Assembly (NCBI RefSeq): GCF_902459465.1
Contig: NC_047073.1
Location: forward strand, 12,648,001-12,712,000
Direction: 5' to 3'
Origin: Asterias rubens
Lineage: Eukaryota
DNA length: 64,000 nt
The notes beneath the pieces are model-generated. The model saw only the letters and a list, made by a program, of their open reading frames with translations. It did no database searches and had not been told where the DNA came from. The position numbers were made by a program, and so were the translations under genes. Within the stretch, counting starts at the first letter, position 1. Every line of letters begins with the position of its first letter. Shown in pieces: positions 1-58,600 of the stretch.

Positions 1-183
1 CAAGAACAATATTGCATTCAAATAATAGTACACATTTTGAAAACTATTGTTGCTTTTTGGTCACGGTTTTACCCTTTTCTGCATAAGTACAAAAACATAC
101 AGTTTGTAGTGTCATGTTTTTATTTATTTCGAAAACCTCGCAATACAAGCAGTTTACAAAATCCTTGTTTAACTTGTTTTCAG

Positions 184-519
184 GCGTGTCAGCAGTTGCA
201 GACTTTACTAGCGTGACAGCTTCTGGCCCTTTGCAGAACGACACATACGTATTCATCGCAAGTTATTTGGTGACTGGAGCAGGTGATGAGCCCACAGCAA
301 CCAAAAAAGAAGAGCTTGGTTTAACACGATTCATAAAGACGGGTACAGGTACCGGTATCACTGAGTGGACGGATTCTTCTGATTCTTTACCATCGACATT
401 GCCAGACAATGTGAAGAGGAATATGTATAAAGTTCTCAATGCCACTACAGGAAGCGTCGGTGTGTTCAACTGGACGTATGGCTCCAACACAGTGAAAACG
501 ATACGGATGAGATCCACAG
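184..519 (+). CDS. Gene 1 exon: Tie-like N-terminal Ig1 domain
   Basis: ttttcag|GC...ACAG|gtgagt, 336 nt, phase 1-1; ends VKTIRMRS, like the Tie2 Ig1 end IRTMKMRQ; paralog exon 46508-46843. Confidence 0.85.
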
Positions 520-3500
520 GTGAGTGATTCAAATAAAGAAAACATATAATGATTTATAATAAAAGTTGTGTCCTGGCCAGCAAAACTTTGCCTTCAAAAT
601 AAGGCATACGATTTACATCGATAATTAAGGTTATTAATTGTTAATAGCACAATTCATATGAAATCAACCTGCACAAACTGGGTTGTCATATGTTTAAATG
701 AAAAAGGGAATCAACATTACAATCAATATTGTCTTAAATACCGGATGGCATTGCTTTGTCGTAAATTAGTGTTGTTTTAACACATGACGTCAATTTGAAC
801 ACCCCAAATTTGCAGGGCAGGAACATAAAATCAAAATTATTATAAAAAAACCACAGTTTTAAGTGATCATCCTAAACACGATTCTAATGTGACAAAACAG
901 ACATTCTGGACATTGTCATAATAATTGTTTAAGAACGTTGCGAAGTAAGCATTGTGAAGGGCAATGTTCTAAGTGCAAATGTTGGCATAATTATATTTTA
1001 CGTAAACGATTTTCAACAATAACCAAGTTTCTGCGTGTTCGGTGTGACTAACTAAGTGCTCAATAGTTACGATACTTCAACTATAAATCTCAATTCCGAG
1101 ACTTGAACAGGTACTTTTTAACGAGAATGCTATTTAAACTTATTTATGGCGTGTTTGTTTACCATTTAAATGTGATATTTATATTGATTATAGGCAAACA
1201 CTTGTATTTTTTGTAATTGTCGATCGAGAATTTAGGAAGTTATTCCGGTGCCCTCCCTCGTATAAATTACATACCCAGTTTTAACGTTTTATGTTTGGCA
1301 TTGTATGGGTCATGATTGTATCATGCATGTTTTGTTTATTAGCGGTAGCACCGAGTGTGAAAAATTTGCGATTTCAAACGAAGACTTTATTTCAACCGCT
1401 AATAATATTTCGCTAAAAGCCACAGGACATATTTGGTAATATTGTCAAAGACCAGTCAATTTGAGCTAAATTGGTCGTCGAAGTTGCGAGATAATAGTGG
1501 AAGAAAAAATAACCTTGTCAACGTTTTAAACTAACAGCAGCTCTCCATTGCTCGTTACCAAGTAAGTTATTATGGCAGCAATTATATTGAGTAGTTACCA
1601 ATAGTGTCCTGTGCCTTTAAGTCATGTTGTGTGCTGGATTCTTTTTTTCTGCTCTAGCAATAACAAATTTCTTGCACTCGAACTAACTGTTTGAATTCGA
1701 AGTAATTATTTCGTGTGCACAAAGATTCACCAGTCTTGCTATCCGCACCACACACAAAATCCGTTCCTTTTCTTTGCACCGTCTCATGGCTCGAACGCGC
1801 GGTGACATCTTTATGAATATTTAATGAGCCGGAACCGTTCGTGAAATTTGGGTAGTTTCTCGGTTTGTAGACGTTGGTTCATTAAAATGTCCCACAATTG
1901 CTAAAATTAAGGGTATATCTTCCATTTTGCCTCGGAAAAAATGACTTTATTGACATTCAAGTGGTGTATTTTGATCGTCAACATTGGTTTCATAACAGAA
2001 AAACCCGAACACAATTACTTTACAATATTTCTCTCTTAAACATTCTCCCACACGCAAATACTTACATGAATGAATCGACAATGTCCTACTCTAAAATAGT
2101 ATAGTTGTTTTGTGCCTAATTTTGTGTAGTCCAGTCATAGTCCAAAATATGCTGACGCCATTTAAACACATCGTAACGAAAAAGGCCGCCATGATTGTAC
2201 ATGTAATTCCTGTATTCTGATTGGTGGAGACGGGTAGTGTGGGTGGCCCGGATGTCGCAAGGATCAATTTTAATAATTTTCCGTTTGGTCACCGGTCAGA
2301 ATCAGAACGAACCTTGTTTAAACGCTTTTAACGTGTACCTTTGTTGTCTTGTTCAATACTAAAACAAGCAACCTTTATCATTTTGTTCGCTTCAACAATC
2401 CTAATTACGGTATTGCAGGCTCTGTACATATTCTCGAGACTTGTTTATGTTGGATCCAAATGTTTTCGAGAGCATCGGAGTGAATGTCGTCAATCATAAT
2501 ATATACGCTTTAATACAAATGTATGTGTCATTATCAACTGCACCAACTCAAGGGACTTGAACACCTTCATATTAAAATCAAAATTTCAATTTTCAGCTTT
2601 AGTTTTTGGCTTTATTTGTGGTTTTCTAAAAGAAATGTAAACGGGTGTGTAACAATTTAATTTGCTTTAAGTAAAACTTAAATTATTTCCATCAAGTAAA
2701 CCTTTGATCACTGTGACGCTTTGCAAAAGACCGAGCTTCAGGTGAAAAAAAAAAAAACAGAGCGCCATACAAATCAAAACGGCATTGTCATGAAACAAGC
2801 ATCAAAGGTAATCAACATTCATCTAGTCCTCGATATGACTAAGTTTACCTCACAGTAAGGACTATAGATTAACACGGAACACAACTGAGTGTGCTTGTTC
2901 GGGTACAAATAATGTTGAGCGCACCAAATCTCAGCTCTACATAATATCTTGCTCTTGAACATTTATTTTGTGTGTCCTTTAAATCATTTTCTTCGATACA
3001 ATTATTTTGTGTTTTGGGACAAACGAATTGAGTCTAAGTGCACGAAATTAATCCCGAGTTTTGTTTAGTGCTAAAATTACTGTGTCCTTCGGCCTCGAGA
3101 AATAGGTCCCTCAGTCTGGTCACTCAAAGTCCCTCGGGGAATAGACGAACACTAGTTACCTCATTGCCAGTCAATATGTGTATAGTATCCCCCTTAAAGC
3201 CATCCGATATTATATAAATGGTAAACAGCAATGGAGAGATAATGATAGTGTAAACGGCTCCCTCTGAAGTAACGTAGTTTTCGAGAAAGAAGTAATTTTC
3301 CACGAATTTGATTACGATACCTCATAATTAGTTTTCAAGGTCCCGAAATCAAGCATCTGAAAGCACAAAACTTCAAGGTGACAAGGGTGTGTTTTTCTTC
3401 CATTATTATTTCGCAACTTCAACGACCAATTCAATTCAAATTTTCACAGATTTGTTATTTCGTCCATATGTTGAGACACACCAAGTGAAAAGACTGATCT

Positions 3501-6500
3501 TTGACAATAACCAAGGTGTCCTAAGCCTTTAAACGTGAATTCTTTTATTCTTGTTTTGTTGTGTCATGCCGTTGTAATTTTGAACTCCCCAGCAACCCTT
3601 CTACCCATTTTTGTCACCCGCACGGTGAACCTCAACGACAACGTAAGTCTGACAGTTAAACAAAAGATACCAGATGAACAGAATCAACAGAGCAGATGGA
3701 GAAAGGATGGCGGCGATGTGGTAAAACAAAATACCTTTAACTTCGATATAAACAATGCCAATACCGACGACAGCGGTATTTATGAGTGTCACTATCAGCA
3801 TAAACGTGGTGAAGGAAATCAAGCGCTACTGAGATTAATCGTCAGAGGTAAACCGAATAATTTTATGTTTTTATTTAGTGACGATTATATCTTATGAAGG
3901 TTCTTCGTGAGTTTTTGCTACAACGTTTTTGTTTAATTACTCACCCGATGTTCATCCACTACCATACATTCAAGCAACACAATACAGAAGCTGATATACT
4001 GCTGGCCTTGTCAAGTAACTTTGAACATTGCAAAATAAATTCAAAGGTTGGGATCACTGTTTAGTTTTTCACTGTCTATGCTTTCGCTCAAATTCCAGTC
4101 TCAGCATGCAAGAGCACTTCGACAAAATACTATCCTGGTTTGAGGCTACATGTATATGGATGAGACTTTGTTTTACCAGGGTCAGTCTCTTTAATGTCTT
4201 GTTTGTGGGAAGGGGGGGGGGGGGGCATAATGCTTGACAAAAAAAACCCTTCATACATTGTGAAAGACTTTTTGTGGGGGAGTTAACTTACAACAAAGAA
4301 TACGTTACTCACTGCAAGAATCATAAAGCAATCTTTTGTCTAAGATCTCACGATTACCGTTACCGTCACTTCACAAAACAAACCATCTCGGTATAACATT
4401 GCTGCACATTCATATCAAGGGGTGTTGACAACTTTTCCCCTATCAATGAACGCAAAAAAGGAAAATAACGTCCTCCATACAACTCCATCCATTGACTGTG
4501 ACCTGAATATCATCATAGTTCGATACAAATCTCGGTAAACCTACAATATTTACAAAGGGAAGCACACATTTTCTTGTAACAACGTTTAGCATGACGTATG
4601 CTGATCATACGAGGTTTGTTTCCTTCTTTTCTTTGTTTACAGGTTGTCCCAAAAATAAACATGGCCCTCCTGACTGTCGCGACGAGTGCCCGAGATGTCT
4701 CAATGGTGGCATTTGTGATGACGTTGGGGGTGGCTGCATTTGTCCACCAGGGTTTGGTGGTAGACTCTGTGGAAGAAGTACGATTTTTTTTTATAAAAGA
4801 GACGATATTGAACAGCGGTTGATATGAAAAAAATCCCTAAGCACAACACAACATAAATCATCAACTGAGTGTAATTGCAGAAGCATATCATAAACCAAAG
4901 ATCTTTACAAAACCGTAACAAAAAAAAACTATAGCCGCATGTAACTCTTGAGTCAGTGGAGGTCTAACTTTTTAAATGAATTTAACTTAATATTGGACAT
5001 TGGACATTCAACTGTATCGGTTTGCACAGCGAATATCAATGTTGTTTTTACGATATTGGATATTGGACATATCAGCAGTGCGAGGACCCAATATTTATTG
5101 AGTGTAATTGATTCGAAGTACGGAAAACAGTGTTACCATATTGCTTTTTATGCATTATACGTAATACCACCAGATATTCAATCTTTGTTGATATCTTGTG
5201 AATTGTAATTAGTTAAAGGACCGAACAGCTTTGGGCGTCGAGGGGGCCTCCGCTGTGACGCTGTTGGGTTGCCACACGATGGTTCTACCTGCAAAGGAAT
5301 GCTGTTCTGTTTACCGGATCCATACGGATGCAGCTGTGCCGCTGGGTACCAGGGACTTGAGTGCAAGACAGGTACACCTTTAACTCCCACATTCAGTAAC
5401 CATATTCAAGGTTGTTGCCGTGGGCAAACTTATAATATGACCTCAGAACACAAAATAATCCCTCAATCTTCAAACGGCAGCTCAAATTACACCCCTTCAA
5501 ACAAATATCTTAAATACTGGACTGTTGACTTTGGGAACCGGCGCCCTTGAATGGCATTTTCTTTGTCAGATACTGTGCGCTCTATACATGTAAGTGCTGT
5601 ATATTATTATTCTGTATTACTATTATTTTAAATTCATCAGTTAAACACACAACAGTGTTTTAAAGTACTAAAAACAAAACGTCATTTCGGTGAAGAAAAA
5701 AAAAATGCACACTACAACATATCTCCCCTCCCCGCTGTGTGCTTTAACTTTGTTCGTATCAAGGTGGTTGTGCGTCCAGGCCCATTGAAGCAGTACATGG
5801 ATGACGTCTCTATAATTGGGTGGAACTGTAGGGGAACGTTAACAATTCGCCAAAGTTATCTTCAGATACAACAACACGGACTTCATACCTTGTATTGAGA
5901 ACCGCTCAAGACAAATGTTTGTAATTTGTAAAACAATAATTTCAGCGGTAATAGATTCGATACGTGCGATATGAGCGTTACAAAGCGGTTATAAAAGACA
6001 CAGACAAACTTGCGCTCATTTGTTTAGAGCTTTATCTCTGGTTCTTTCTTAACTGGTTCAGGTTGTACTAATGGAACATACGGTGCCAACTGTGCCCAGA
6101 TATGTCACTGTGCCGAAGGGGTGTCATGTAATGGAACAACGGGTGAATGTGATGGAGACTGCGCAGCGGGATACAAAGGAGATAACTGTCAAAGTAAGAG
6201 GACATGCCTTCAGTTAACATTTGAAAATGTTGAGGAATTCAAACTATGATGTAATGATCTCTTTAGATTGTATCGATGGCAAATTTGGTGCAAACTGTGC
6301 CCAGAACTGTCACTGTGCCGACAGTGCGTCATGTGATGGAACAACGGGTGAATGTGATGGAAACTGTGCAGCGGGATACACAGGAGATAGCTGTCAATGT
6401 ACGGATTATAGCTGGATATTGGAAATTTAAGAAACACCGAATTTGATTTCAATTTCTACATTAATAATCATCATGTATCTATTCCTATTTCCCAGTACAA

Positions 6501-39426: not shown

Positions 39427-40167
39427 GTGTACTGTATAGGGTAGATGGCATTAGCTTTCGATCCGAACTGGACCTTATTTTTAAACGTTTATTTACCGCT
39501 TTTCTTCTTGGACGTTCATTGTACCAGCTAACAATAAACCGTGTTCGATTTCAGCATTATAAATTTGCGTGGTGGGTGTGTTAGATTTATAAGCGTCTCT
39601 TTCTGTAATTTTTTTTTTCTGATGATTTATTATGGCGTAAAAAAAAAATAATAATAAAAAAATAAATAAATAAACCAACAACAACAACAACAAGCCGACA
39701 ATGTTCAAATTATAGGCCTTCTGTGAATTACATTATTAAGAGAAAGATCGCCCCCACTTTTTGAGCACAAAATACCACGATGAATCCAAAAGCGAAAAAA
39801 TTTACTACTAATTTATTGAGTCCAATATTCAACTCTGTTGAGAACTTGCGTCTGTATATACAGAGACGATAAAGGAATTGATAGCTTTCTGCTTATCTCG
39901 ACAATCAGTGTGTGTTCAGTTGTCTTTGAGGAAGTCGCAGTATTTACAAGATGAACAATGGTTGTTTGAATTAGTTTAAATTATCAAAACGTCTTGTGTC
40001 AACTAAAATACAATTACAAAGGATGTTATTTTGTTTTATTCCAACTGCAAAACTGATTTATGAACCGGGCACCATTTTGTCACCACATCCCTGTCGCAGT
40101 CAGCTCTATCAGAGGGGCGTGCTTAAAGTGTGTCATTGAACCACCTCATCAAATGACGGGTCTCTTT

Positions 40168-40556
40168 TTAAAGGCAGTGGACACTGTTGGTAATTGTCAA
40201 AGACTAGCCTTCACAGTTGGTGTATCTCACCATATGCATAAAATAACAAACCTGTGAAAATTTGAGCTCAATCGGTCATCGAACTTGCGAGATAATAATG
40301 AAAGAAAAAAAAGCACCCTTGTCACACGAAGATGTGTGCGTTCAGATGGTTGATTTCGAGACCTCAAGTTCTAAATCTGAGGTCTCGAAATCAAATTCGT
40401 GGAAAATTACTTCTTTCTCGAAAACTACGTCACTTCAGAGGGAGCCGTTTCTCACAATGTTTTATATTATCAACCTCTCCCCATTACTCGTCACCAATAA
40501 AGGTTTTATGATAATAATTATTTTGAGTAATTACCAATAGTGTCCACTTCCTTTAA
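40168..40556. mobile_element. Kolobok-type MITE family A (intergenic)
   Basis: TIRs and TTAA flanks intact. Confidence 0.85.
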
Positions 40557-40689: not shown

Positions 40690-41501
40690 CATGTTGCTGA
40701 ACTTGGCTACACGAATAACAATGAGGCAAAGTCACAAATCAAATGTGCAAAAATTACCGTTGTCTGTGAACGGTCAATAGGTAATGCTCAATAATCAAAC
40801 CGATCAAGCTTTTTAGAACCATAAATGGCTTACAAAATGGTTTGAACCAGTGAGCTCCTCGGACATAAACCCTCATCTCATGAAAAACACCTTGTTTGAT
40901 GGGTATTTGCAAGACGATATTCTACAGCCGAATGCAATCCCATATTTGCAGACTCTTGGATCAAATGCCATCTTTCAAGATGACAACGCTCGCCCCCATC
41001 GAGCCCTACCGTTGACTGACTACCCGAAAAATGTTGGGGTGCACCGGATGGATTGGCCCGCTAACAGTCCAAACCTGAATCCCATGGAACATCTGTTGGA
41101 CCAGCTTGGCATCGCTGTCCACGCCAAAACCACCAACACATCAACTGTGGCTGACCTAACCAGGTTCCTTAATGAAGAATGGAATGCCATCCCTCATCAT
41201 CAGCGCATCACAAGACTTGTGTGCAGCATGAGAAGGTGCCAGGCTGTCATCAACGCCTTCGGATCATCCACTTGTTACTGAACTTTTTGATTCAATAAAG
41301 TGTATTAAGATCAGTAAGTTGTCTTGCTCTATACCAAACGTCTTGTCTCAATAAAGTGGATTATGATCAGGAAGTTGTCTTGCTTGTTTGAATTACAGTG
41401 TCAAGTTGATTGTTCACACAGTAACACAAATTTCTAATTTTGGCACATTTGATTTGTGACGTTGTCTCATTCTCATTAACGTGGTCAAGTCCAGCAACAT
41501 A
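40690..41501 (+). mobile_element. Internally deleted Tc1/mariner transposon
   Basis: TA flanks; imperfect TIRs of about 60 bp (catgttgctgaacttgg...gtcacaaatcaaatgtgc / reverse at about 41440-41501); ORF remnant 40850-41281 with FQDDNARPHRA...DWPANSPNLNPMEHL (Tc1 catalytic C-terminus, SPDL changed to SPNL). Confidence 0.88.
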
Positions 41502-43582: not shown

Positions 43583-43643
43583 ATGGCGGGACAACTTCAT
43601 GTGAAACTCAAGCTGCTTTTCATATTGTTAGGAGTGTTTGAAG
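43583..43643 (+). CDS. Gene 2 first coding exon: signal peptide
   Basis: acagtcATGG context; MAGQLHVKLKLLFILLGVFE then G|gtatag phase-1 donor, splicing in frame to G-VSA-VVDF; plausible cleavage after VSA. Confidence 0.8.
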
Positions 43644-46600
43644 GTATAGTCCTTTCTTTATAGTTTGTTGTTTACGCTTTCTTGAATGTCATGACGTCGC
43701 CATGATATTAAAAAGGAAACAATCGTAAACTTAAATAAAAGGGTTAAATCTTAGCTGCAAGTTTTAATAGTCACTACTTACTGTTTTATATATATATAAA
43801 AAGTATTTAAGTTGTTTTCCAAATGTTTTTATTTTTATTTTTACATAAAATATTGCAAGAGGAAAACAGTGCACTTTTGGTGCACTTTTAAAAATGTTGC
43901 TGACATGTATAACTGTAAGCAACATTTAACATAATGCGTTAAGTGTTAGCATTTACATTGTGTGGTATATGAGCACGCAGGGGGGCCCTGATTGTATCTT
44001 TGTGCGAAACCCTTGGTGGAGATTGAGTGGGGGGGAGATTCACAAGAACGTTTTTTGGTTTAAGCATGTCCTGAGTGGCTCGTTGACAAGCTCTACATTC
44101 AAATAAATATTTACTTACATACTATGTTAAAAGATCTTGGATTTGGTTTTATTCTCGGAAGCTTTTGGATTTTGACATTGTATGACCAGGGATGACTCTC
44201 CATCTGTGCGCTTGATAACCGTTGTTTGTATTCTGTGTTGTTAGTGGCTCTGTGTGTGCGTCTTGATTTACATATACTCTTGTCCAAAGTAGGCACATTG
44301 GTTGCACACCTTAGTTTAAAGGAACATTACAGTATCGGTTTTGCTACAAACAAAAAAACAGTTATGGCAGTGTCAGCACTTTATGTAATACACCATACAT
44401 AAACTGACAAACCTGAAGAAGTTTGAGATCGATCGGCCATCTGGGTCACCAGAAAATAGTAACAGACGATTACACGTAAATTTGCATGGCAATGATGCAA
44501 AACAAAAATAATAATAACACGCTCACTGAGCGATAAACTCCAAACGCATAGCTAAATTTATTTCTCATCAAATTATGACATTTCAGTGAGAAATATTTCA
44601 AGGCGGCAACACGTTAAGCATTCGTTAATGGAACCTTTTTTGTTCCTTGAAACTAGCCGAAATGGGGATAAAACAAGAACAAAGTTCAAGTTACCCTGCC
44701 CTGCCCCAAACAAACGTTGTTGTAGGCACATTGTTTTCGAGCACACAGAATTATCGCAAATGTATAAAATATGGCATGTCAAACAATTTAAAGCTTAATA
44801 TAAATCGAATTTATAAAAAAAAAAAAAAAAAAAAAAACATAAAAAAAAAATGCAACCGAGTGTTTCATACGCGGGATTTTTGGTTAACCTTGCCCTCGTG
44901 AATGGGTCTTTATTTTCTTCCGAACAAAACGAAACGTTTGATTCTTGGACGGTTATGAGCTTTTTTTGTAACTTGGCATTTTTGTCCATATTTACACTGC
45001 TTGAAAATGTCCATTGTTGACATGAGGAATGCAAAAGTGTTGAAATCGACGTATTTATGTGTTGTTAAGTACGCACTGTAACAGCAGAACATAAATGTTC
45101 GAGACCGTCCAAGTTGATATCGAAATTTGAATATCGTATATTGCTAAACATCTTGCATTTCTAGCTTCTAGAATAGTTACATACAAAAATATATTGTATG
45201 AGCTATTTACAAGCCAGGGCACTATACATAAGGTTCATTTTTCTGCCCGTCGGATTCCTTTCCAGACTGTCTTCTCTAACCGGGAGAACACGAATACATC
45301 TTCAATATTGTATACAATAACACGTTTTCAATAACACGGTTTTGAATTAGAAAGACTTGTTTAGAACGTTCTCCTTCTGTTGTCCACTCTTTGGAGGCTT
45401 TTTACTTGTGTTCTAAAATTAAATAATCAAATTCACACTACTTTCGCTCTTAAGAATTTATACCAAAATGCACATTTTGTTCATCACTGCTTTCTATGTA
45501 GTTTATTTATTCATAGGCAGTGGACACTATTGGTAATTACTTTAAAAAATCATCATTATAAAACCTTTCTTGATTACGAGTAATGGGGAGAGGTTGATAA
45601 AATAAACTTTCTGAGAAACAGCTCCCTCTGAAGTGACGTAGTTTTCGAGAAAGAAGTCATTTTTCACGAATTCGATTTCGAGACCTCAGATTTAGAATTT
45701 GAGGTCTCGAAATCAAGCATCTGAAAGCACACAACTTTGTTTGACCATGGTGCGACAAGGGTGTTTTTTCTTTCATTATTATCTCGCAACTTTGACATAA
45801 CAACCGAATGAGCTCAAATTTTCAGAGGTTTGTTATTATATGTTTATGTTGAGATACATTAAGTGAGAAGACTGGTCTTTGACAATTACAACACGTGCTC
45901 AGTGGCTTTAACTATTAATGGTTTGATCTGTGTCACTAAACAACAATTTTTTCAAAATACAAATAACAATATTGCATTAAAATAATAGTACACATTTTGA
46001 AAACTATTGTTGCTTTTTGGTCGCGGTTTAACCTTGTTCTAATCGTACAAATGTTGTTGTGCATAACAACAACAAAATATAGTTTGTAGTGCCGTTTTTT
46101 TTTTTTTTTATAAAACCTCGCAATACAAGCAGTTTACAAAATCCATGTTTAAAGGGAGGGTACACGTTTGGTAATTGTCAAAGACCAGTCTTTTTCACAA
46201 GCCTGTGAAAATTTGGGCTCAATTGGTCATTGAAAATGCGAGAAAATATATGATAGAAAAAAACACCCTTGTTGGACGAACTTGTGTGCTTTCAGATAAG
46301 AATAAAATACCTCTAGCTAGAAGTATTTTATTATTTTAGTGAGAAATTACCTCTTTCTCAAAAAATACGTTACTTCAGTGGGAGTCGTTTCCCACAATGT
46401 TTTATATTATTAACATCTCCCCAATGTTCGTTACCAAGTCAGTTTTTAAGTTAATATTTGTTTTGAGTAATTACCAAACATGTACTTTCCCTCAAACTTG
46501 TTTTCAGGCGTGTCAGCAGTGGTAGACTTTACCAGCGTGACAGCTTCTGGCCCTTCGAGTCCGTATAACAACCTACACGTATTCATTGCAAGTTATTTGG

Positions 46601-49600
46601 TGACTGGTGATGAGCCCACAGCAACCAAAAAAGAAGAGCTTGGTTTAACACGATTCATACGGACGGGTACAGGTACCGACATGACTGGGTGGACGAATTC
46701 TTCTGATTCTTTACCATCGACATTGCCAGACAATGTAAAGAGTAAGATATATAAAGTTCCCAATGCCACTACAGGAAGCGTCGGTGTGTTCGAATGGAGG
46801 TATGGCTCTAACACAGTGAAAACGATACGGATGAGATCCACAGGTGAGTGATTCAAATAAACAAAACATATAATGATTTATAATAAAAGTTGTGTCCTGG
46901 CCAGCAAAACTTTGCCTTCAAAATAAGGCATACTATTTACATCGATAATTAAGGTTAATAGTTGTTAATAGCACAATTCATATGAAATCAACCTGCACAA
47001 ACTGGGTTGTCATTGTTTAAATGAAAAAGGGAATCAACATTAACATCAATATTGTCTTAAATGTTGTTCTAACACATGACGTCAATTTTAACACCCCAGA
47101 TTTGCAGGGCAGGAACATAAAATCAAAATTATTATAATGAAACCACAGTTTTAAGTGATCATCCTTAACACGATTCTAATGCGACAAAACAGACATTCTG
47201 GACATTGTCATAATAATTGTTTAAGAACGTTGCGAAGTAAGCATTGTGAAGGCCAATGTTCTAGTGCAAATGTTGGCATATATTATATTTTACGTAAACG
47301 ATTTCCAACAATAACCAAGTTTCTGCGTGTTCGGTGTGACTAACTAAGTGCTCAATAGCTTCGATACTTCAACTATAAATCTCAAATCCGAGACTTGAAC
47401 AGGTACTTTTTAACGAGAATGCTATTTAAACTTATTTATGGCGTGTTTGTTTACCATTTAAATGTGATATTTATATTGATTGTAGGCATACACTTGTATT
47501 TTTTGTAATTGTCGATCGAGAATTTAGGAAGTTATTCCGGTGCCCTCCCTCGTATAAATTACATACCCAGTTTTAACGTTTTATGTTTGGCATTGTATGG
47601 ATCATGATTGTATCCATGAATGTTTTGTTTATTATCGGTAGCGTCGAGTGTGAACAATTTGCGATTTCAAACGAAGACTTTATTTCAACCGCTAATAATA
47701 TTTCGCTAAAAGACACAGGACATATTTGGTAATATTGTCAAAGACCAGTCAATTTGAGCTAAATTGGTCGTCGAAGTTTCGAGATAATAGTGGAAGAAAA
47801 AATAACCTTGTCAACGTTGTATACTAACAGCAGCTCTCCATTGCTCATTACCAAGTAAGTTATTATGGCAGCATTTATATTGAGTAGTTACCAATAGTGT
47901 CCTGTGCCTTTAAGTAATTTTGTGTGCTCGATTTTTTTTCTTCTGCTCTAGCAATAAAATATTTCTTGCACTCGAACTAACTGTTTGAATTCGAAGTAAT
48001 TATTCCGTGTGCACAAAGATTCACCAGTTCGTGAAATTTGGGTAGTTTCTCGATTTGTAGACGTTAGTTCATTAAAATGTCCCACAATTGCTAAAATTAG
48101 GGGTATATCTTCCATTTTGCCTTGGAAATAAATTACTTTATTGACATTCAAGTGGTGTATTTTGATCGTCAACGTTGGTTTCATAACAGAAAAACCCGAA
48201 CACAATTACTTTACAATATTTCTCTCTTAAACATTCTCCCACACGCAAATACTTACATAAATGAATAGACAATGTCCTACTCTAAAATAGTGTAGTTGGT
48301 TTGTGCCTAATTTTGTGTAGTCCAGTCAGAGTGCAAAATATGCTGACGCTAATTAAACGCATCGTAACGTAAAAGGCCGCCATGATTGTACATGTAATTC
48401 CCGTATTCTGATTGGTGGAGACGGGTAGTGTGGGTGGCCCGGATGTCGCAAGAATCAATTTTAATCATTTTCCGATTGGTCACCGGTCAGAATCAGAATG
48501 AACCTTGTTTAAACGCTTTTATCGTGTATCTTTGTTGTCTTGTTCAATACTGAAACAAGCAACCTTAATAATTTCGTTCGCTTCTGAATCGAAACAATCC
48601 TCATACCTAATTACGGTATTGCAGGCTTTGTACATAATTATTCTCAAAACTTGATGATGTTGGATCCAAAAGTTTTCCAGAGAATTGGAGTGAATGCGTC
48701 AATCATGTATAACGCTTTAAATCAATATTGTGTGTGTCATTATCAGCTGCAACAACTCGAGGGACTTGCCACTGCTGGGTAGAACACCTTCATCTTATTT
48801 AATTGCAAAATGTCATTTTCAGCTTTTGTTCAATTGTTTTTAGTCAACATAAAATGTGAACTTTCCACAAAAAAAAACATAAAGAAAGTACAAATTTAAA
48901 GCTTGGAAATAATGTGTACTTTTCGCGAAAACGTCTTAAAACTTAAAAGTTTATGCTAAATTTCTCAGACGGGTAATTAAAAGAAATATTTGTAAAGCTT
49001 CCATTTTTTTTTCTTTGCATAATATGTCTCGGCGGCACCCTAGCATCTGTATAATATGTAGCCCTCAATTAAAGTAAACTGTCAAGTAACCCTCAAGTAA
49101 AGTAAAACATGTAGCCCTACAGTACGCAAACTAAACTATCGACCTAAATAAAACAAAATAAAATATGCAATTTTTCGTCTAAAACAAAATGAATCACTAA
49201 AGCACTAAATGGTCATTATACACTAGGTTTAAATTAGTATAAGCCACCAAACAAGTAAGAGTCCAATCAATTATAGACACGAAGTTTGTTTCCATTGTAG
49301 TAACTGGGTATATAGTTATCCTAAAAACGTAATGTTATTGTGCCATTAACAACGTGCCGTTAATGACAATGTGAGCTTAATCATTCCGTCTGTTTTTTTT
49401 TTTTTTTTGGGGGGGGGGGGGCGCTTAATTTGACATCCACAGCATCCCTTGTACCAGCCTTCGTAAGCCGTACTGTCAACATCGGCGATGATGTTGCTCT
49501 GACCGTTACCAGAAACACAGAGGATATAACGATTTCAAAAAGCAAATGGAAGAAAGACAACGGTATTACGATGAACGCGGACATCCTGGACTTCAACATA

Positions 49601-52600
49601 GCCAATGCTAGTACCAACGACAGTGGTATTTATGAGTGCCATTATAAACATGAACGTGGCAAAGGAAACCAGGCGCTACTGAGATTGATTGTTAGAGGTA
49701 AGCAAAATGATTCATTTATTTATTTATAATGAAAAAGAATATGTTGTTTCACATCTCTCCCATTCTACATAATCCCAACTGGATACCCGTTTATTTCATA
49801 ATACAATATGAGATCATTCTTCTGACATTCAAGGCTCTCCATGGACTAGCCCGTACCTACATACAGAGCATGCTTCAGCCCCGTAGTGTCAGGCCGAGTC
49901 TGAGGTCATCGGGCAGCATGCTTTATGTTCCTCTGACCTGTTTATCCAGCTATGTATGGCCTTTAGTAACATTTCAACCAATCTCTGGAACTCTCTGCCT
50001 CAACATCTCAAGGATACACATGACATCTCACGATTCCAACAATCTCTTAAGACCAATGTCTTCAGATTAGCCTATAAACATGAGTGAAATTGTATTCTTG
50101 TTCTTGACCAGCGCCGTTGAATGTCATACAGATAAAGTGCGCTTTACAAATTATGTTTTATTATCATATTATTATAACTGTCTAGATATGAATACTTTCA
50201 CTTAACTCTGCAATACAATACAGCAGACCAAAACACTGTGCATTAGGCAGTCTATGAAAATAATGGATAATTAACACACACTAATACACTACACAAACGG
50301 GGGTTTAATTGCTGCATAAAATGGACTCTGGGCATCCCCAACACCCTTGAGATGGTCTAGAGATACTAAAACAATTCCCCCATACCATGCTTGCCTGCAG
50401 AGAATCCATCATGTATTCTAAATAAGGCATAGTCCCCACACTAACGACATTGGTCAACGCAAGTCAATGGGGGAAATCTCCATAATACCTTGGACCAGTG
50501 CCAGGGTAAACCAGATGAGCTAGGTTACTCAAACTCTCCATTATGTTTATCAATCGTATAATGGAGGAAGTCAAGAAAAAAACAGCTTCCTACTTTATTA
50601 ATAAGAGGAGTAGATAACAAAAACTGTTGATTTTGTGCCATGAAAACCATGGTTAAACTAGAACCAGACTTCAATGAACATATGTTAGCAACTACTTCTC
50701 TCTAAAACATCAGAGACACAATTAAATAGGTATATGCTCCATCTAACTGCATCCGAAGCCCATTGCGATCACCAGGCCTTGGTCAACGTGCCGTTAGCTT
50801 GAACTGCGAAGGACGGAATTTTTCACAAAGTAAATGCGAATGTTTTATAACTGGGGATTGGTGATAACGTTTAGTCAGCCGTCACCCAAACAAACTCAAG
50901 CTCAAAACACCAAAGGACGATCAGAGACGACAGACACCTGTTTTTTATAAAGACATGTCGTACATTTCTACTAAAAGGTTCAAGCCAAACTATTTGTTTT
51001 ACGTTTCGTTTGTTTTATTATTTTTAATAGATAGTGATTTAATTTGCTAGTAAGCCTATATTTAGTTGCTGCTTACTTTTGTTCGCACTCACTGATTGGT
51101 TTACAGACAATTATATGGGCGCACGACATTGCAAATCCACACAGGTCGACTGCGAATAAATGTCCGCCTAGTGGAAACACGTTGGCGTAAGAATAGTTAT
51201 ATTGTCCCCCTCTGTTTTCGTTTAGAATGGCAACTAATGCCAATCGTCTTAACTTCACTGTAGTTATAAGTTATAACTTGAGGCCGGTAACAATCTGTAG
51301 CAGAATATTCCCGGCAGTCTAAGAAGCTCAGGCAAATCATCGATTGCTGACTATTCCTGTGTCATCGTAAAGTTGATCGACCAGCTTGCGGCTTAAATAT
51401 GCGGAATGGAGGGTTAAATATAAAAAAGAACAAGTATTTGTATGCTGGTTTGAATGCTAACGTATGCCATGTTTTTCTTTGTGAAAACAGGATGCCCACA
51501 ACATAAATATGACCTAACGGATTGTAGCAACAAGTGTCCGAGATGTCTTAATGGTGGCGTTTGTTCTGACGTTGATGGTGACTGCATTTGTCCACCTGGG
51601 TTTGGTGGTAAAATTTGTGGAGAAGGTGAGCAGAAAAAATATGAACATTTTATAGCACTTTACTTAAAACAAAACTAATACACCCTAGTGAAACAAAGTT
51701 TCTAAATAAAAATCTTGCAACCTGAAAGGCTGAGCCATGTCTATACTATGTTGGCATTTAGGCATAGGTACCTATATATTAACCTTGGTAAATATACCGT
51801 TCATATGTTTCAGACCATATTAAGTCATATTATGGTATTTTGCTAATCAACCTGGGCCCAATTTCATAGAGCTGCTGAGCACAACAATTTGCTTAGCTTG
51901 AAATTTCTTCCTTGATAAAAACAGGTTTACCAACCAAATTTCCATGTGATTTTCAGGATAGGCAAATACAAGCTGAATACCAGACAAGCACTATGCAACA
52001 AATGGAAATTTGGCTGGTAATCCTGTTTTTATCTGGGAAGAAATTTCATGCTTAGCAGATTTTTGTGCTTAGCAGCTCTATGAAATTGGGCCCTGGTTGG
52101 AGACCACACTAAACTGCATGCTAAAGTTGTGATTTTTGGAAGAGTTGTTGGAGCCACGTGCCACCAATCTGGTTGTTTATTACCACCCCCCCAAAAGACC
52201 GCGTGATTACACTGTTCTTAAGAAGTATCATCCATATCATGCACCACAGTAATTAATTAGGTGTTCATCACGTTGCGTTCAACTGATCACCGTGTTTTTG
52301 TAATAAACAAAAAACTCTATGTCTAGTTGTTGTTGGTATCATGATGCATTAGTAAAAGGACCGAACCGCTTTGGCCAAAAAGGGAGCCTCCGCTGCGATG
52401 CTGTTGGGTTGCCTCACGATGGTTCTACCTGCAAAGGAATGCTGTTCTGTTTACCGGATCCATACGGATGCAGCTGTGCCGCTGGGTACCAGGGACTTGA
52501 GTGCAAGACAGGTACACTTTAAACTCAAACAATCAGAAAACATCACCAAACAATGTGCCATTGATAAAATAACATATTCATAGGCTAAACGCAAACAATA

Positions 52601-55600
52601 TTTTCAAAAGCCAAGAACAAAATACAGCTTCCAAAGAAAACATAAATGCACAAAGAGTACACCTATCCCTTCCCCCACTGTCTTGAACGACTATGTTAGA
52701 TCCAACCACGCGAACTTTATTACCATGGGTTTAGAATCCCTATAGAAACAAAATTTCATTCGGTGTACGTTTTCTGGGCAAAAAGCTTCAATGTACCAGG
52801 AGTTGATAAACAGACAGCCAGCGTTCGGTTTGTTTTTAGCACTTTGCTTTGGTTCTTTCATAACTGGTTCAGATTGTCACGATGGAACTTACGGTGCCAA
52901 CTGTGACCAGAACTGTCACTGTGCCGACAGTGCGTCATGTGATGGAACAACGGGTGAATGTGATGGAGACTGTGCAGCGGGATACAAAGGAGACAACTGC
53001 CAAGGTACGGATTATAGCTGGAAACTGGACATTTAAGAAACACCGAATTTGATATTCAGTGTCTACATTAATAATCATCATGTATCTTTTCCTATTTCCC
53101 AGTACAATGTACCTCTGGTGAATTTGGTTTGAACTGTAACCAGACTTGTCACTGTGCGGACGTGGAATCATGTAATGGAACAACGGGTCGGTGTATCGGA
53201 GACTGTGCATCGGGATACAAAGGAGATAACTGTCAAGGTACGGAAAAATGCCTTCATCTGAATCTTGAAATGTAAGGAAGTTCAATTTTACAATGTTCTC
53301 TTTTCTGCTTTTCAGTGTGTATCGATGGCAATTTCGGTGTCAACTGTGCCCAGAACTGTCACTGTGCTGTTACTGGACCAAATAATTATAGGTGTCAACT
53401 AAAGGATTGTGACGGTGCTTTTCCATTTTAGGTTAAATGCTAAGGTTTTCTTAAACGGTAAATTATGTTATACATGTACATAAACATGTGTTGTGTGCAA
53501 CTATACACCAACATAATGGACATTTTAATTGAAAAGACGATGGCATTTTTTAGATATTGACGAAATTATGGAGCAAGTGTAATAAGAAAACACAATCACA
53601 GAAGTGCTACTGACATTAAACGCTTCTCAGATTCCAATTGCAGGGAATAGCAACTGATCTTTTTACATAACATACATTACTTTGATGTGAAACGTTCTCA
53701 AAATGTTTTATGTTATCCAAAGTTGATAAGTTGATGTATGAAGCTTACCGAAAGCTGTATATTGCCAGAGTGATTACCAAACGTACGCATTCCCTTTATA
53801 AGTTGTTATAATGGTGTTTTTGATTCAACAGAGCAATGTCTTCTCTACGAATATAAGCTATCGTGCAGTACGACTTGTACAATATTAGGTAGGTTGCATT
53901 CATCTGCTGAACCCAGATATGTAGGCTTGTTCCCAACTCGATCTTCCCTATCTGTGATTCTTTTATGATGAAATTTAGATACTCGTTGTTAATCTTTAAA
54001 TCAAAAAATGGTCTGATAAATTTTCTTCCCAATGTGTCTTCCCTATTTTAAACTTTTTTGGGGTCACATATTTGCTGATGTTTTTTGTTTGTTAGAGCAA
54101 AATATTATGACTAACTGTTTATATCCTGTTTATATCCTGCATTGCCTTTTGCATTATTCTTATTGTAGCTCAGTCCTGTCTCTCTGCATGGATGTATTAA
54201 AGTGAGGCGTGGTCTCCAAGGTCAATGTAATCATGACATTTAAGGGATTAGTTCCATGGTTCATTTTCACCCATTGAGCAGTGACTTTGTGAAGTGAGTT
54301 GTATACGCTCTTCACGATCTTTTATACACTCGGAATGTTCCAATTGATTTCAGATCCCAACATGATACCCCGACGTCTCAGTGTGTCTTCTTATTCTGCT
54401 GACGATTCATTCACTCACACATTATCATGGGAACCAGTAATCTGCCCAGCAAAAGGCTTCAGTATTGTGAACTACGTATATAAGGTCCTTGATGGACGTG
54501 GGAGTGAAGTTGAACCTGTTGAAATCGAGGGTACTTCTGTCAACCTTCACTTGACTAATTGCACAAGATATCAACTCGAAGTTGCTGCACGAACGAGTAA
54601 AGGCATCGGGATTTACAGTGAAGAAATCTACACGACTAAATCAACGGGTAAATAATCTCTTAAATAAGTCAGTTCGGTATATGTTATAATTATTGTGTGT
54701 TTAGTTGTGAGTTTAAGTTTGCATTTAACCATAGTTTCATATTAATCATTGCTGACACAATGGCGTGCATTTAGCCCTCGGGGCGCTGGCAGTTGTTTAT
54801 GGACAAGTAGCAGTAGGCCTACTGAGATACCTTGTGATCTACAAGCCTGATTATGATACGGTACACGGCAAAACACGAGACAAGACGCTTGATGTGCAAA
54901 TAATTATTGTTTGTGTAAGTTCCGGCACAATTTTCAAAAAAATACAAAGTGAAATATAAGTGAGCAGCATTAAACTTAATATTACTACAATTTGCAACTT
55001 GCAACTAAGCGCAAAATGTGGCTATAGTTTCATACATCTTCTACTCAGGTCAGTAATAATGTTTCAAAATAAAGAAGATTAACGTCGTAGCATGAAATTG
55101 TCATGGGTGTTATTATAGCCTTCTTTTCTTGTATTTGTTTGTTTTTGAAGTTCCCAATCCTGTAGCAAGCGTAACCGTGTCTCCAACAAGCCATAATCAA
55201 CTTGCAGTATCATGGGATACTCCTCTTACCGACAATCAGAGTCCTTGTCATGCCACTGAATACCTGGTGACATATGACCTTATACAACTTGAGCAGTGTG
55301 AGGTGGCAAGTAGAGGTATTGAAACATTGACCACAACCAACACTACACTCACAATTGAGAGACTTGAAGCGTACTCAACATACTGGGTGACTGTTACATC
55401 GAAAAACCAAGCTGGAAGTAGTACCCCCGTCTCCACAACTATGACGACAAAAGAAACAAGTAAGTAAGAGTCACTTTTTGTGCTTAACTGCTCAACAACA
55501 AGAGCAAACTAACCATCTTCAAATCAACCGTATAATCAATTATATTGTATGGCTCGGATACATGGACAGTCACCCGGGAACTTGAAGAGAAACTGGATGG

Positions 55601-58600
55601 GTGCTATACAAAACTCATGCGGAAACGCTTCAACGTTCACTGGAGTCAACACATGACAGATACAGAAATGTACGGTAAGGAGCCAAAACTATCCACCAAA
55701 ATACAACAGCATCGTCTGAGACTAGCAGGGCATTCATACAGAAGCACCAGAGAACCTGTCTCTCAGCCTATGACCTGGTCACCGAAACATGGAAGGAGAA
55801 ACAGGGGAAGACAAATGGCTCAGCTATACAGATGTAGTTGCTAGGGACATCGGGGTGCTTCCAGCTGATCTTCCCAACCTAATGAGACCTAGAGAGGGAT
55901 GGGCGAGCCTCAACATGATTCCGACCTCGGTCGACTAGAGACAGAGTGAGAGAGAGAGAGAGACGGGGGGGGGGGGGGGTTAGAGAAGGGTCGATGTTAC
56001 TATGGAAAGTTGTGTTTTACTTTGCTTCTATTGTGCAGAGTTTAGTTGATCTGTAAGGACTGTACCATTATTCTATAGAACTCCGCTTGTAGAGTTTTTT
56101 TTGTCTTATGATATTTTAAATTAAATCGTTTACTGTGGTTTCATAACAGAACCAGAAGCACCAACTGTAATTGTCGACTCGACATCGACAGATTACATCG
56201 AGTTCGCATGGGAGCTTCCATGTGGAAGAACGGGTGGCAACATAACAGAGTACCGATACAAGTATAAAAAAGCAACAGACAATAAGTTCATGCAGACTAC
56301 CACAACAACGGATACACGTATAAGGATAACTTCCTTAACGCCATGCACTTCATATGTATTTCAAGTGACAGCTTTGAACAGCATTGGAAAGGGAACGTGG
56401 TCCAATGAGACTAGGCAAAATACAACACAAAAGGGTAATTTATGGTATATCCAACGTCATAACAGCATAACAATAATTAATAAAGCATTATTGCAATGCA
56501 AAACTATTTTTTGTATTACCAATAATGACGTTATTATAAAAAAAACCGTGTTTATTGTGCGAGCTCTTTACATTCAAAGATTGAGTAGCTGTTTGTTCAA
56601 AAAAGTGATGTCATCATTACCGCAAAGGGATGCTAGCATTTTTAAAAGTTCTACCTTCTCATTTCCCTCATTCACACAATGCCACCAACAAAATTGTTCG
56701 AATAATTATTTAGGGGAATTCAAGTCGTAGAAAAATAACTTTTGTTGCTTAATTAATAAAACAGGTATACAGGTGTTAACCAATATAAATTTTGTTAATA
56801 GATTGTTAAAAGTCTTACTGGATCTTTGGTACTTTTGGTGAATAATTGTGTGTTGCATTGCATTTTATACAGAACCTTTGGGTGTCAGGAATTTAAGCGT
56901 TGAACCAGGCAGCCAAGGTATACTGGTTGCGTCTTGGGAAGACAGAGGAGTTGGCCATACAAATAATCCGTGCCTCGCTTCTAACTACCTTGTGACCTAT
57001 GAACTCATCAATCTGGATCAATGTGGGGAGGGTGATCAATCTGATGGCTCACTGAGCACTACAGATACAACCATCACTGTCGAGGGTCTTCACCCATACT
57101 CTACATACAAAATAAGTGTAACATCGAGAAATGAAGCTGGCGATGGACCCACGAAATCCAAATCAGCGATTACAACAGAAAGAAGTAAGTAAAATACCTG
57201 CTTGTTGTTGGCCATGTTTAGTGCATCTATTCCGTCAGCTCGTCGTAAGAGAGACGCAATGACACCTTTGTTGTTGAAAGATCTGCACATTTTCCGACTC
57301 CTCCTTATTATAAATGTGTTAATGGTCTCTTCCAACCAGGTTTCGGGATTGCGCCTACATTCAATAGCAGTAGAGTGACATCAACTAGCATCCGCATCAC
57401 GTGGAACCCCATCCCATGTGGTAGTAGAGGAGTTCGTATCACTGGTTACGGCGTGAGTTTGTCTCGACAAAACGGGCAGAGCAAGCGAGACAACCTACAG
57501 CAAGTGCCAAACACTTCTGTATCTGCACAGTTTGACCAGTTATTCCACTGTACAACATACATTATCACCGTAACTACTACACGACTTAGGGGTGAAGGGA
57601 CATCGTTTAGCCGTGAAATAGAAACTGACTCAATTGGTACGTATGGAATGGGCAGTTTAAAAACTTATGTTTAAAGCCATTGGACCCTTTCGGTAAACAC
57701 TATTGTCCAAGGCCCAGCCTTCGTGTATCACAATTTCTATATCAAATAACAAACCTGTGAAAATTTAGGCTCAATCGGTCATCGGAGTCTGGAGAAAATA
57801 ACGGGAAAACCCACCCGTGTATCCGCGCGTTTCGCCGTGTCATGACATGTGTTTAAAATAAATCCGTAATTCTCGCTAACGAGAATTGATATTGTTTTAC
57901 TGTTTTCTCAAAAAGTGAAGCATTTCATGGAATAATATTTCAAGGGAAGTCTTTCACCACTACCTTCTGTAAATCCTGTAAGTTAATCCTGTAAGTTATG
58001 GGAGCTTCCCTGTGGAAGAACAGGTGGCAACATAACGGAGTACCGATACAAGTATAAAACAGAAGCAGACAATGACCTCATCCACCTTAACACAACAACG
58101 GATAAACGTATAAGGATAACTTTCTTGACGCCATGCACTTCATATGTATTTCAAGTGAGAGCTATCAACAGCATTGGAAGAGGACCGTGGTCCAATGAGA
58201 CTAGGCAAAATACATTACAAAAGGGTAATACATGTTATATACAACGTCATAACATCATAACTATAATTAATTAATCATTATTGCAATGCAAAACTATTTA
58301 TTTTATTACCAGTATGACGTTATTATAAACAACCTATTCTGTTTATTGTGCAAGCTCTTTACATTCAAAGATTGAGTAGCTGTTTGTTCAAAAAAGTGAT
58401 GTCATCATTACCGCAAAGGGATGCTAGCATTTTTAAAAGTTCTACCTTCTCATTTCCCTCATTCACACAATGCCACCAACAAAATTGTTCGAATAATTAT
58501 TTAGGGGAATTCAAGTCGTAGAAAAATAACTTTTGTTGCTTAATTAATAAAACAGGTATACAGGTGTTAACCAATATAAATTTTGTTAATAGATTGTTAA

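Follow-up and report, generated by a model that had tools for sequence, protein, structure and literature searches.

The Tie-like ectodomains of a six-gene cluster in the starfish Asterias rubens form a recombination mosaic, in which tracts of about 1.5-4 kb have been traded between receptor kinase and receptor phosphatase genes. We put at about 0.7 the probability of the reading that explains the data best as a whole: a mosaic cluster with three old blocks spanning the second Ig domain (Ig2) and the first EGF domain (EGF1), a patch within Ig2 that keeps changing, and a role of the block in ligand specificity that we infer. The window is a stretch of 64,000 nucleotides (GCF_902459465.1, NC_047073.1, positions 12,648,001-12,712,000, forward strand), and all coordinates refer to it (Table 1).

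Organization of the cluster

The six genes lie in tandem on the same strand. The first three (P0, P1, and P2) encode Tie-type receptor tyrosine kinases and lie upstream of the window. They are followed by the genes of three receptor tyrosine phosphatases whose head is Tie-like, A and B inside the window and P5 downstream of it. Downstream of the heads of A, B, and P5 are a transmembrane exon and the exons of phosphatase domains D1 and D2 (PF00102; five exons of the A/B phosphatase part matched, E 1e-9 to 3e-12), the active-site motif of D1 (VHC / SAGVGRTG) being spread across two exons. With a signal-peptide exon and one hydrophobic segment of 26 residues as the single transmembrane segment, followed by D1-D2, genes A and B are predicted to encode classical receptor-type protein tyrosine phosphatases. 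The preliminary description had implied a Tie2 label for both genes, which is wrong: in place of the cytoplasmic tyrosine kinase of the Tie family they carry two PF00102 domains, and the Tie-type kinase is their partner P1. The kinase genes P0, P1, and P2 differ from the phosphatase genes in their transmembrane segment and contain exons for a kinase (glycine-rich loop, HRDLAARN, DFG); in P1 and P2 these match PF07714 (E 2e-11), with the Tie2 kinase as the best four PDB matches (E 1e-10). Their own transmembrane and kinase exons rule out P1 and P2 as truncated pseudogenes or secreted decoys.

The cluster is rich in repeats and gene A contains an assembly gap (20559-20821), as might be expected if uncollapsed haplotypes, mis-assembled repeats, or dead pseudogene partners inflating dN/dS had created the patterns described below. 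Such an artefact is highly improbable: the copies are unlike in domain content (kinase or phosphatase), in EGF and FN3 number, and in their unique introns; all four copies retain an intact signal peptide, intact splice sites, and intact reading frames; and derived changes are heavier on B (12) than on P1 (7). Furthermore, a spliced transcript contig from another sample (X9, record 25) joins Ig1, Ig2, EGF1, and EGF2 of gene B, the part for which exon joining in one mRNA was seen, and matches gene B exactly outside Ig2. A search of RNA runs with an intron-rich query matched no RNA dataset.

Table 1 Features of genes A and B (window coordinates)
Feature	Position	Strand	Remarks
Gene A tract matching B (Ig1 exon 184-519, intron 2)	171..2250	+	94-97% identical to B
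Gene A Ig1 exon	184-519	+	Inside matching tract 171..2250
Gene A island (intron 2 end, Ig2, intron 3, EGF1, intron 4)	2605..5207	+	Without intron homolog in B or P1; short 78-85% stretch common with P2
Gene A Ig2 exon, beta-type module	3593..3847	+	Best whole-genome matches 57-63% identical; without close relative in assembly
Gene B signal-peptide exon	43583..43643	+	DNA 98% identical to gene A counterpart, 2.4 kb before window start
Gene B tract (Ig1 exon, most of intron 2)	46495..48440	+	94-97% identical to gene A 171-2250; K2P 0.036
Gene B 'Ig1' exon	46508..46843	+	Splice sites, transcript contig
Gene B tract (intron 2 end, Ig2, intron 3, EGF1, intron 4, EGF2, EGF3)	48543..53056	+	Introns match kinase gene P1 only
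Gene B Ig2 exon, alpha-type putative recognition module	49443..49697	+	85 codons, phase 1-1, AG/GT boundaries, transcript contig
Hypervariable patch of gene B Ig2	49508..49609	+	Residues 22-55; strand B end, BC loop, strands C and C', strand E (model)
Gene B EGF1 exon	51491..51625	+	Best PDB match Tie2 196-229; transcript contig
Gene B EGF2 exon, Tie-specific cysteine motif	52353..52511	+	Best PDB match Tie2 251-277; transcript contig
Gene B tract (FN1 exon end, FN2 exon, next FN3 exon start, introns)	54450..56400	+	88-99.6% identical to kinase gene P2; K2P 0.003-0.025

Tie-likeness of the ectodomain

The top PDB matches of the EGF1 and EGF2 exons are both to Tie2 (residues 196-229, E 5e-7, and 251-277, E 4e-8, respectively), with which the two domains are collinear; as in the Tie ectodomain, this EGF1-EGF2 pair has Tie-type cysteine spacing and comes directly after the second Ig domain. 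Ig2 itself gave generic weak Pfam Ig matches, and its structure model (pLDDT 84.5) superposed on Tie2 123-209 (VIA; Z 10.9, rmsd 2.3 A) at 28% identity, the highest among the matches listed, the match being tied with many unrelated Ig domains. When Ig2 alone was searched by sequence against the PDB, generic Ig domains were returned, Tie2 not among them. For Ig1 there was no Pfam match and no PDB sequence match, and the predicted structure had a pLDDT of 35.

In Tie2, residues 161-169 of Ig2 bind angiopoietins, which for their part use their fibrinogen-related domain to bind the receptor (PMC8294587). By offset, Tie2 161-169 corresponds to about residues 38-46 of the hypervariable patch. The position of Ig2, the collinear EGF1 and EGF2, and the non-specific fold match suggest that Ig2 may be the ligand-binding domain that sets specificity, as in Tie2. 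In the literature collection searched, nothing relevant was found on echinoderm Tie clusters or on phosphatases with a Tie head.

Divergence between A and B at Ig2

Both Ig2 exons are 255 nt long, in phase 1-1, and flanked by AG/GT. As the preliminary description had reported, they are identical at 48/85 residues (56%; 47/84 full codons and a shared split codon), but at only 6/28 in the central patch (residues 22-49 in our numbering, 23-50 in that description). Its other comparisons between the two genes also held: Ig1 was given as roughly 80% identical (81-83.5% at the amino-acid level), many FN3 exons and introns as far more alike (exons: 71-98% protein and 85-99% DNA identity across FN3, juxtamembrane, and phosphatase segments), and intron homology as running from the window start to ~2590. 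We obtained 2-2604 = 45962-48830 for this homology, at 94-97% identity to about 48440 and ~80% thereafter. Across Ig2-EGF1 homology is lost, as claimed, with no alignable A-B intron and the exons alone aligning at 79-80%. Resumption at EGF2 is true of the EGF2 exon and ~30 flanking bases (5208-5403 = 52348-52543, 91%), but intron homology returns only from ~6023 = 52835, and is 97-99% from 9746 = 53250 onward.

Synonymous divergence (dS) between A and B was 1.33 in Ig2, 0.45 in EGF1, and 0-0.34 in 18 other exon segments; the contrast at Ig2 is far beyond chance. Silent divergence in Ig2 is thus high and its dN/dS has an ordinary value (0.23), and the contrast therefore reflects the age and genealogy of the block, not rapid protein change: the Ig2 difference between A and B is old, not fast-evolving. 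Divergence between paralogs is not readable as fast evolution without silent sites and introns.

Exchange of tracts between kinase and phosphatase genes

Gene P1 sits 110 kb upstream of B, and the Ig2-EGF1 block of B with its introns (about 48.5-52.7 kb) matches P1 and no other sequence, at 80-97% identity in sliding windows (82.7-87.9% in blastn HSPs, the longest match quoted spanning 2.7 kb). Intron 2 of B matches only A (96%), and the first FN3 exons of B with their introns match kinase gene P2 at up to 99.7%. The segment 46860-48440 occurs genome-wide in A and B alone; about 100-170 nt of it are repetitive, and a transposon was rejected as its identity. Intron K2P distances were 0.036 and 0.017 for A-B, 0.054-0.081 for B-P1, and 0.003-0.025 for B-P2; the tracts linking B to P1 and P2, kinase and phosphatase genes in the same cluster, are 88-99.7% identical, introns included.

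Per-exon trees, which the preliminary description had recommended, were incongruent: Ig2+EGF1 grouped B with P1 (100/99) and FN1 grouped B with P2 (87/91). Informative sites agreed, favouring (B,P1) by 21:4:2 in Ig2 and (B,P2) by 9:1:1 in FN1 (Fisher p = 7e-6). Congruent exon trees together with an ordinary Ig2 dN/dS had been named in advance as evidence against the proposal; dN/dS is indeed ordinary, and the trees disagree. The proposal that the Ig2 module was swapped with another family member is supported by the match of the B block to P1, by flanks matching A or P2, and by the incongruent trees, and so is a swap or mosaic within the cluster. Exchange, by ectopic recombination or gene conversion, was repeated, and each gene is therefore a patchwork.

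A donor is known for B's block and none for A's, and many introns of A and B, like their phosphatase exons, are 96-99% identical. These observations are compatible with one recent import, in which A and B would be young duplicates from a beta-bearing ancestor, B would have received a single ~4 kb tract from P1, and nothing would resist homogenisation. We regard this history as possible but on the unlikely side. The B-P1 block (K 0.054-0.081) is more divergent than the A-B flanks (0.017-0.036), so that its exchange seems to predate the last homogenisation of A and B, which went no further than the two edges of the block. A private block is likewise retained by P2, amid flanks nearly identical to A or B.

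Three Ig2 lineages

The Ig2-EGF1 blocks fall into three deep lineages with saturated silent sites: alpha (phosphatase B and kinase P1), beta (phosphatase A), and gamma (kinase P2). Ig2 pS was 0.62, comparable to that of the B-P5 phosphatase exons (0.51). The three lineages persist while other ectodomain segments have been homogenised; P2 has flanks that match A or B at 95-99.7% identity, and its gamma block is private. No donor or closer Ig2 for the block of A or P2 was found in the whole 418-Mb assembly. When 1.84 billion proteins were searched with an Ig2 profile, giant multi-Ig proteins swamped the list and family members were not recovered, and a homologous-protein search gave no match with A's Ig2 and one 97-residue fragment (P0151) with B's. 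The preliminary description had offered, as a second possibility, that Ig2 escapes homogenisation under diversifying selection. Three persistent lineages, with no donor for the block of A or of P2, agree with this, but the A-B dN/dS is not raised, and signs of selection appear only in young comparisons.

A hypervariable patch in Ig2

Between B and P1, the patch of 34 residues had a pN of 0.242 and a pS of 0.207 (4 changes), compared with a pN of 0.017 in the framework and a divergence of 0.057 in the flanking intron; replacement divergence in the patch is thus 4x that of the intron (p = 9e-8). The B-P1 dN/dS for the whole exon (1.25) was not significantly >1. All of the B-P1 amino-acid differences (16/16) are at sites also variable among the deep lineages (p = 2e-6). 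The X9 transcript allele differs from B at 10-11 places in Ig2, nine of them within the patch and none silent among those translated, and at 0 of 553 nt in adjacent exons (p = 3e-6). The fragment P0151 represents a third haplotype, resembling P1 at residues 26-33 and B at residues 40-55; this pattern would fit a stepwise intermediate as well as a recombinant.

Patch pS is also raised (0.21, 4 changes), and imports from unsampled donors could therefore partly explain the excess without selection on point mutations; diversifying selection on the patch is plausible, not proven. The raised silent sites would also suit a neutral origin of the island, in which tracts fall at random, a block past ~20% divergence is shut out by mismatch rejection, and the patch is an unconstrained loop with occasional short imports. 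The A-B dN/dS fits as well, and Ig loops generally tolerate change. However, relaxed constraint alone never exceeds the neutral rate, and replacement divergence in the patch is 4x that of the flanking intron; both the X9 differences, confined to Ig2, and the reuse in B and P1 of sites variable in the deep lineages also argue against this origin, which we judge unlikely.

Discussion

Kinase and phosphatase genes of the cluster have repeatedly traded exons and introns of their ectodomains, and most of the ectodomain evolves in concert. In the mosaic reading that we favour, a single exchange of the alpha block from one type of gene to the other would have left a matched pair (P1 and B) with the same putative recognition module; judging by its domains, the pair consists of an 'off' phosphatase and an 'on' kinase with a common Ig2-EGF1 block. 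A patch of ~34 residues would keep changing, through amino-acid replacements and, probably, through exchange of very short tracts. Selection for distinct specificities may keep the three blocks apart, and high divergence may also block homology-dependent repair inside the block.

This yields a testable model of one recognition module on enzymes of opposite activity, with three old module types side by side. Should ligand choice depend on the module, Tie signalling in starfish would be regulated by ligand-matched kinase/phosphatase pairs, a logic known for vertebrate immune paired receptors, but not for receptor kinase/phosphatase pairs. The cluster is also a clean natural case of the limits of gene conversion, since exchange ends at both edges of a probable binding module.

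Comparison with known systems

Paired activating/inhibitory immune receptors (Siglec-11/16, PMC5701461; CEACAM, PMC2832619, PMC5112662; KIR2DS4/KIR3DL2, PMC2768862) are likewise reported to be neighbouring genes with near-identical ectodomains and opposite signalling parts. Their ectodomain likeness is reportedly also kept by tract-wise gene conversion, with the Ig domain that binds the ligand standing out as fast or unusual. The starfish cluster similarly has linked genes with near-identical ectodomain segments, opposite signalling domains, and phylogenetic incongruence along the gene. It differs from these systems in having catalytic outputs (Tie-type kinase vs tandem phosphatase) instead of ITAM-adaptor vs ITIM tails, and in its Tie-like ectodomain (Ig-Ig-EGF-FN3) and echinoderm host. 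A bolder and distinctly improbable reading would make this an invertebrate paired-receptor system, with a ligand-sensing Tie head deliberately common to kinase (on) and phosphatase (off); alpha, beta, and gamma would be distinct specificities under balancing or diversifying selection, the copies would serve as mutual cassette donors in short conversions that diversify the binding patch, and the ligands might be fibrinogen-domain lectins.

Like vertebrate Tie2 (TEK; PDB 2GY5, 2GY7, 4K0V; PMC8294587), the starfish genes have EGF1 and EGF2 at collinear positions, with the cysteine motifs specific to Tie, an Ig domain of 84-87 residues directly before EGF1 whose model superposes on Tie2 123-209, and, in the neighbours P1 and P2, a Tie-like kinase. 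Unlike Tie2, A and B have two phosphatase domains at their end. Furthermore, starfish EGF number is ~3 to 7, FN3 repeats are far more numerous, no third Ig domain was seen in the starfish genes, and Ig2 likeness is too weak for sequence search.

In vertebrates, VE-PTP (PTPRB) is the receptor phosphatase that acts on Tie2. It has a long FN3 stalk and a single phosphatase domain, and is functionally coupled to the Tie kinase without a Tie-like head. VE-PTP and starfish A and B are thus all receptor tyrosine phosphatases with an FN3 stalk, but the starfish genes have a Tie-like head and two phosphatase domains; unlike VE-PTP, the starfish phosphatases could themselves be direct sensors of the ligand that the kinase recognizes.

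Divergence of Ig2 between genes A and B

The preliminary description had placed the divergence between genes A and B, two paralogs in the window, mainly in Ig2, and its counts hold: 48 of 85 residues are identical (47 of the 84 complete codons, with the split first codon, common to both, as the 48th), only 6 of 28 are identical in the central stretch (residues 23-50), and Ig1, given as about 80% identical, was measured at 81-83.5%. Self-comparison of the window showed 2-2604 to correspond to 45962-48830, with 94-97% identity to about 48440 and about 80% beyond; across Ig2 and EGF1 the introns could not be aligned. The start of the intron homology and its gap at Ig2-EGF1 were therefore correctly described, but at EGF2 only the exon aligns (5208-5403 = 52348-52543), intron homology being back at 6023 = 52835 and reaching 97-99% from 9746 = 53250.

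Nei-Gojobori estimates over 20 A-B exon segments gave a dS of 1.33 for Ig2, 0.45 for EGF1, and 0-0.34 for the remaining 18. The dN/dS of Ig2 was 0.23, below that of several FN3 exons, and its proportion of silent differences (0.62) is no lower than that separating the phosphatase exons of B from those of P5, a downstream and clearly older paralog (0.51). The A-B divergence of Ig2 is old, not fast.

Gene identities and cluster layout

In gene B the FN3 exons are followed by one exon each for the transmembrane and juxtamembrane segments and by tyrosine-phosphatase exons (PF00102) in two sets, and gene A and P5 are built likewise; because of these exon sets, A and B code for receptor tyrosine phosphatases and not for Tie2 kinases. 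The earlier Tie2 label suits the head but not the whole genes. Human Tie2 residues 196-229 and 251-277 are the top solved-structure matches of the EGF1 and EGF2 exons, respectively, and are collinear; judged by sequence similarity, the head is Tie-like. In 140 kb of flanks examined around the window, the three upstream genes P0, P1, and P2 have heads of the same kind, joined to a tyrosine-kinase domain and to a transmembrane segment unlike that of the phosphatase genes. Their kinase exons carry the glycine-rich loop, HRDLAARN, and DFG motifs and match Pfam PF07714 (E = 2e-11), and the four best PDB matches are Tie2 kinase. The cluster thus runs from three kinase genes (P0, P1, P2) to three phosphatase genes (A, B, P5), with all six genes in + orientation (table below), and a genome search returned at least 20 further loci with a Tie-like head, most on the same contig.

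After EGF2, the copies differ in their count of laminin-type EGF repeats (window 6064-9406 and 52875-53374; P1 and P2 loci), with one in P1, two and one partial in B, four in P2, and five in A. The juxtamembrane exon of P1 and P2 (L036:754-1155, L039:6198-6635) has, shortly before the kinase glycine loop, a long proline-rich run and several tyrosine motifs, e.g., SVYEPV and PTYEDV. Within gene B, an approximately 1.3-kb unit covering two FN3 exons is triplicated (56208-60913). The introns and intergenic DNA of the cluster very often contain a dispersed repeat, about 390 nt long, whose copies are 74-94% identical and lie in both orientations. Between A and B, a 154-residue open frame (40817-41278, +) is, from one motif, a putative Tc1/mariner-type transposase fragment. 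An assembly gap of 263 N lies inside gene A (20559-20821).

Coordinates of features in and around the window (window positions unless a contig is named)
Feature	Coordinates	Strand	Remarks
Cluster	C13:12568001-12772000 = window -80000 to 124000	+	flanks and window
Kinase exons, three upstream genes	about -77.0, -49.2, -13.8 kb of window	+	
Ig2 exon, gene A	3593-3847	+	255 nt, phase 1-1, AG/GT boundaries
Ig2 exon, gene B	49443-49697	+	255 nt, phase 1-1, AG/GT boundaries
Gene B, intron 2	46.8-48.4 kb		matches gene A only; K2P 0.036; restricted to A and B genome-wide
Gene B, Ig2, EGF1, and introns	48.5-52.7 kb		matches kinase P1 only; 2.7-kb HSP 87.9%; intron K2P 0.054-0.081
Gene B	53.25-54.3 kb		matches A (97-99%) and P2
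Gene B	54.45-56.4 kb		matches kinase P2; windows 88-99.6%; intron K2P 0.003-0.025
Gene B, triplicated unit copies	56208-57449, 57998-59245, 59585-60565		last two 98% identical with introns
Dispersed repeat, about 390 nt	15600-15977, 30256-30644, 31806-32194, 34563-34951, 40167-40556, 45515-45911, and others		

Mosaic structure and history of the Ig2-EGF1 block

Each part of gene B was assigned to a paralog by sliding-window blastn and pairwise intron alignments. The Ig2-EGF1 block matches only P1, 110 kb upstream, and its flanks match A or P2, which supports the proposal that the module was swapped in from another family member. Identity to P2 is 95-99% over 6.3-9.7 kb of gene A, and the last ectodomain exons of P1 are 95-97% identical to those of gene A. 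The introns of the gene A block are without a homolog in B and P1, and the block has only one short stretch in common with P2 (78-85%), and no Ig2 closer than 63% to that of gene A was found in a whole-genome search. Parsimony-informative sites favored (B,P1) in Ig2 (21:4:2) and (B,P2) in FN1 (9:1:1; Fisher P = 7e-6), and maximum-likelihood trees grouped B with P1 for Ig2+EGF1 (100/99) and with P2 for FN1 (87/91), EGF2 giving a star. Incongruent per-exon trees had been named beforehand as the sign of recombination, and those of Ig2+EGF1 and FN1 are incongruent. The gene cluster is a mosaic. Kinase and phosphatase genes exchange ectodomain tracts with each other, and homology stops about 0.4-0.9 kb 5′ of the transmembrane exon.

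Divergence is greater in the B-P1 block (K about 0.05-0.08) than in the A-B flanks (0.02-0.04) or in the tracts that B has in common with P2 (0.003-0.025). In the simplest reading, the block of B and P1 (alpha) would have become common to one kinase and one phosphatase gene at some earlier time, and later conversions would have homogenized both its flanks, halting at the block edges. P2 shows a like pattern, with a private block (gamma). One recent import of the block into gene B is less probable and fits the relative ages more poorly than older exchange followed by flank conversion. Once formed, the island may persist for a neutral reason, because high divergence itself would exclude recombination.

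X9, a transcript contig of 876 nt from a public run on another sample, is the spliced Ig1-Ig2-EGF1-EGF2 of gene B, with junctions exactly as predicted. Its first junction has an 8-base ambiguity because the same octamer, ATCCACAG, ends the Ig1 exon (46836-46843) and precedes the Ig2 acceptor (49435-49442). P1 and P2 both have ATCCACAG on the acceptor side; on the donor side P2 has it too, and P1 has the one-base variant ACCCACAG. These copies could be microhomology used in the exchanges, or chance. Gene B, and not gene A, also has a run of about 15 T and then about 14 G (49397-49422), 20 bases 5′ of the Ig2 acceptor, at which reads seem to be cut.

A hypervariable patch in Ig2

The 16 amino-acid differences between B and P1 all fall between residues 26 and 72, with 14 confined to residues 26-54, and all 16 sites are also variable among the deep lineages (P = 2e-6). 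In residues 22-55, hereafter the patch, pN was 0.242 and pS 0.207 (from only four changes), compared with a pN of 0.017 in the framework and a divergence of 0.057 in flanking introns (patch replacement vs. intron: P = 9e-8). Replacement in excess of local neutral divergence points to positive selection or to short diverged tracts having been imported, and the raised silent value, resting on those four changes, favors some import. Pseudogene decay was ruled out as a source of the patch divergence, since derived changes are more numerous on B (12) than on P1 (7), and the kinase gene P1 is intact.

X9 differs from the reference gene B at 10-11 bases in Ig2 and at none of 553 bases in Ig1, EGF1, and EGF2 (P = 3e-6); translated, ten of the differences change six residues (K36R, G40S, I41G, T42V, I47M, K73L), with no silent change. 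Several other contigs cease to fit gene B at about 49520-49570. P0151, a protein fragment of 97 residues from an environmental assembly, resembles P1 at residues 26-33 and B at residues 40-55, as a recombinant or an intermediate would. The diversifying selection proposed earlier is plausible in these young comparisons only; the A-B dN/dS of Ig2 speaks against it.

In the predicted structure of Ig2 (pLDDT 84.5; strands A, A′, B, C, C′, E, F, and G), the variation falls in the BC loop, in strands C, C′, and E and their associated loops, and in some of the FG loop, with conservation in strands A, A′, B, F, and G. This model superimposes on Tie2 residues 123-209, exactly Tie2 Ig2 (Z = 10.9, rmsd 2.3 Å, 28% identity), although many unrelated Ig domains score equally. 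For the "Ig1" exon, an Ig fold was not confirmed by Pfam, PDB sequence search, or a low-confidence model (pLDDT 35). Tie2 Ig2 binds angiopoietin, chiefly through residues 161-169 (PMC8294587), which by simple offset would fall approximately at starfish Ig2 residues 38-46, inside the patch; starfish Ig2 may likewise bind a ligand.

Comparison with paired receptors

A search of a limited library for Tie-headed phosphatases or Tie clusters in echinoderms found no description of such an arrangement. In vertebrate paired immune receptors, activating and inhibitory members are reported to keep like ectodomains by gene conversion, as in Siglec-11/16 (PMC5701461), CEACAM (PMC2832619, PMC5112662), and KIR (PMC2768862). 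The starfish cluster behaves in the same way. It differs from the Siglec, CEACAM, and KIR pairs in that it sets a Tie-type kinase against a tandem phosphatase, which is one new twist; a second is that the segment which is probably the binding module is the only one exempt from homogenization.
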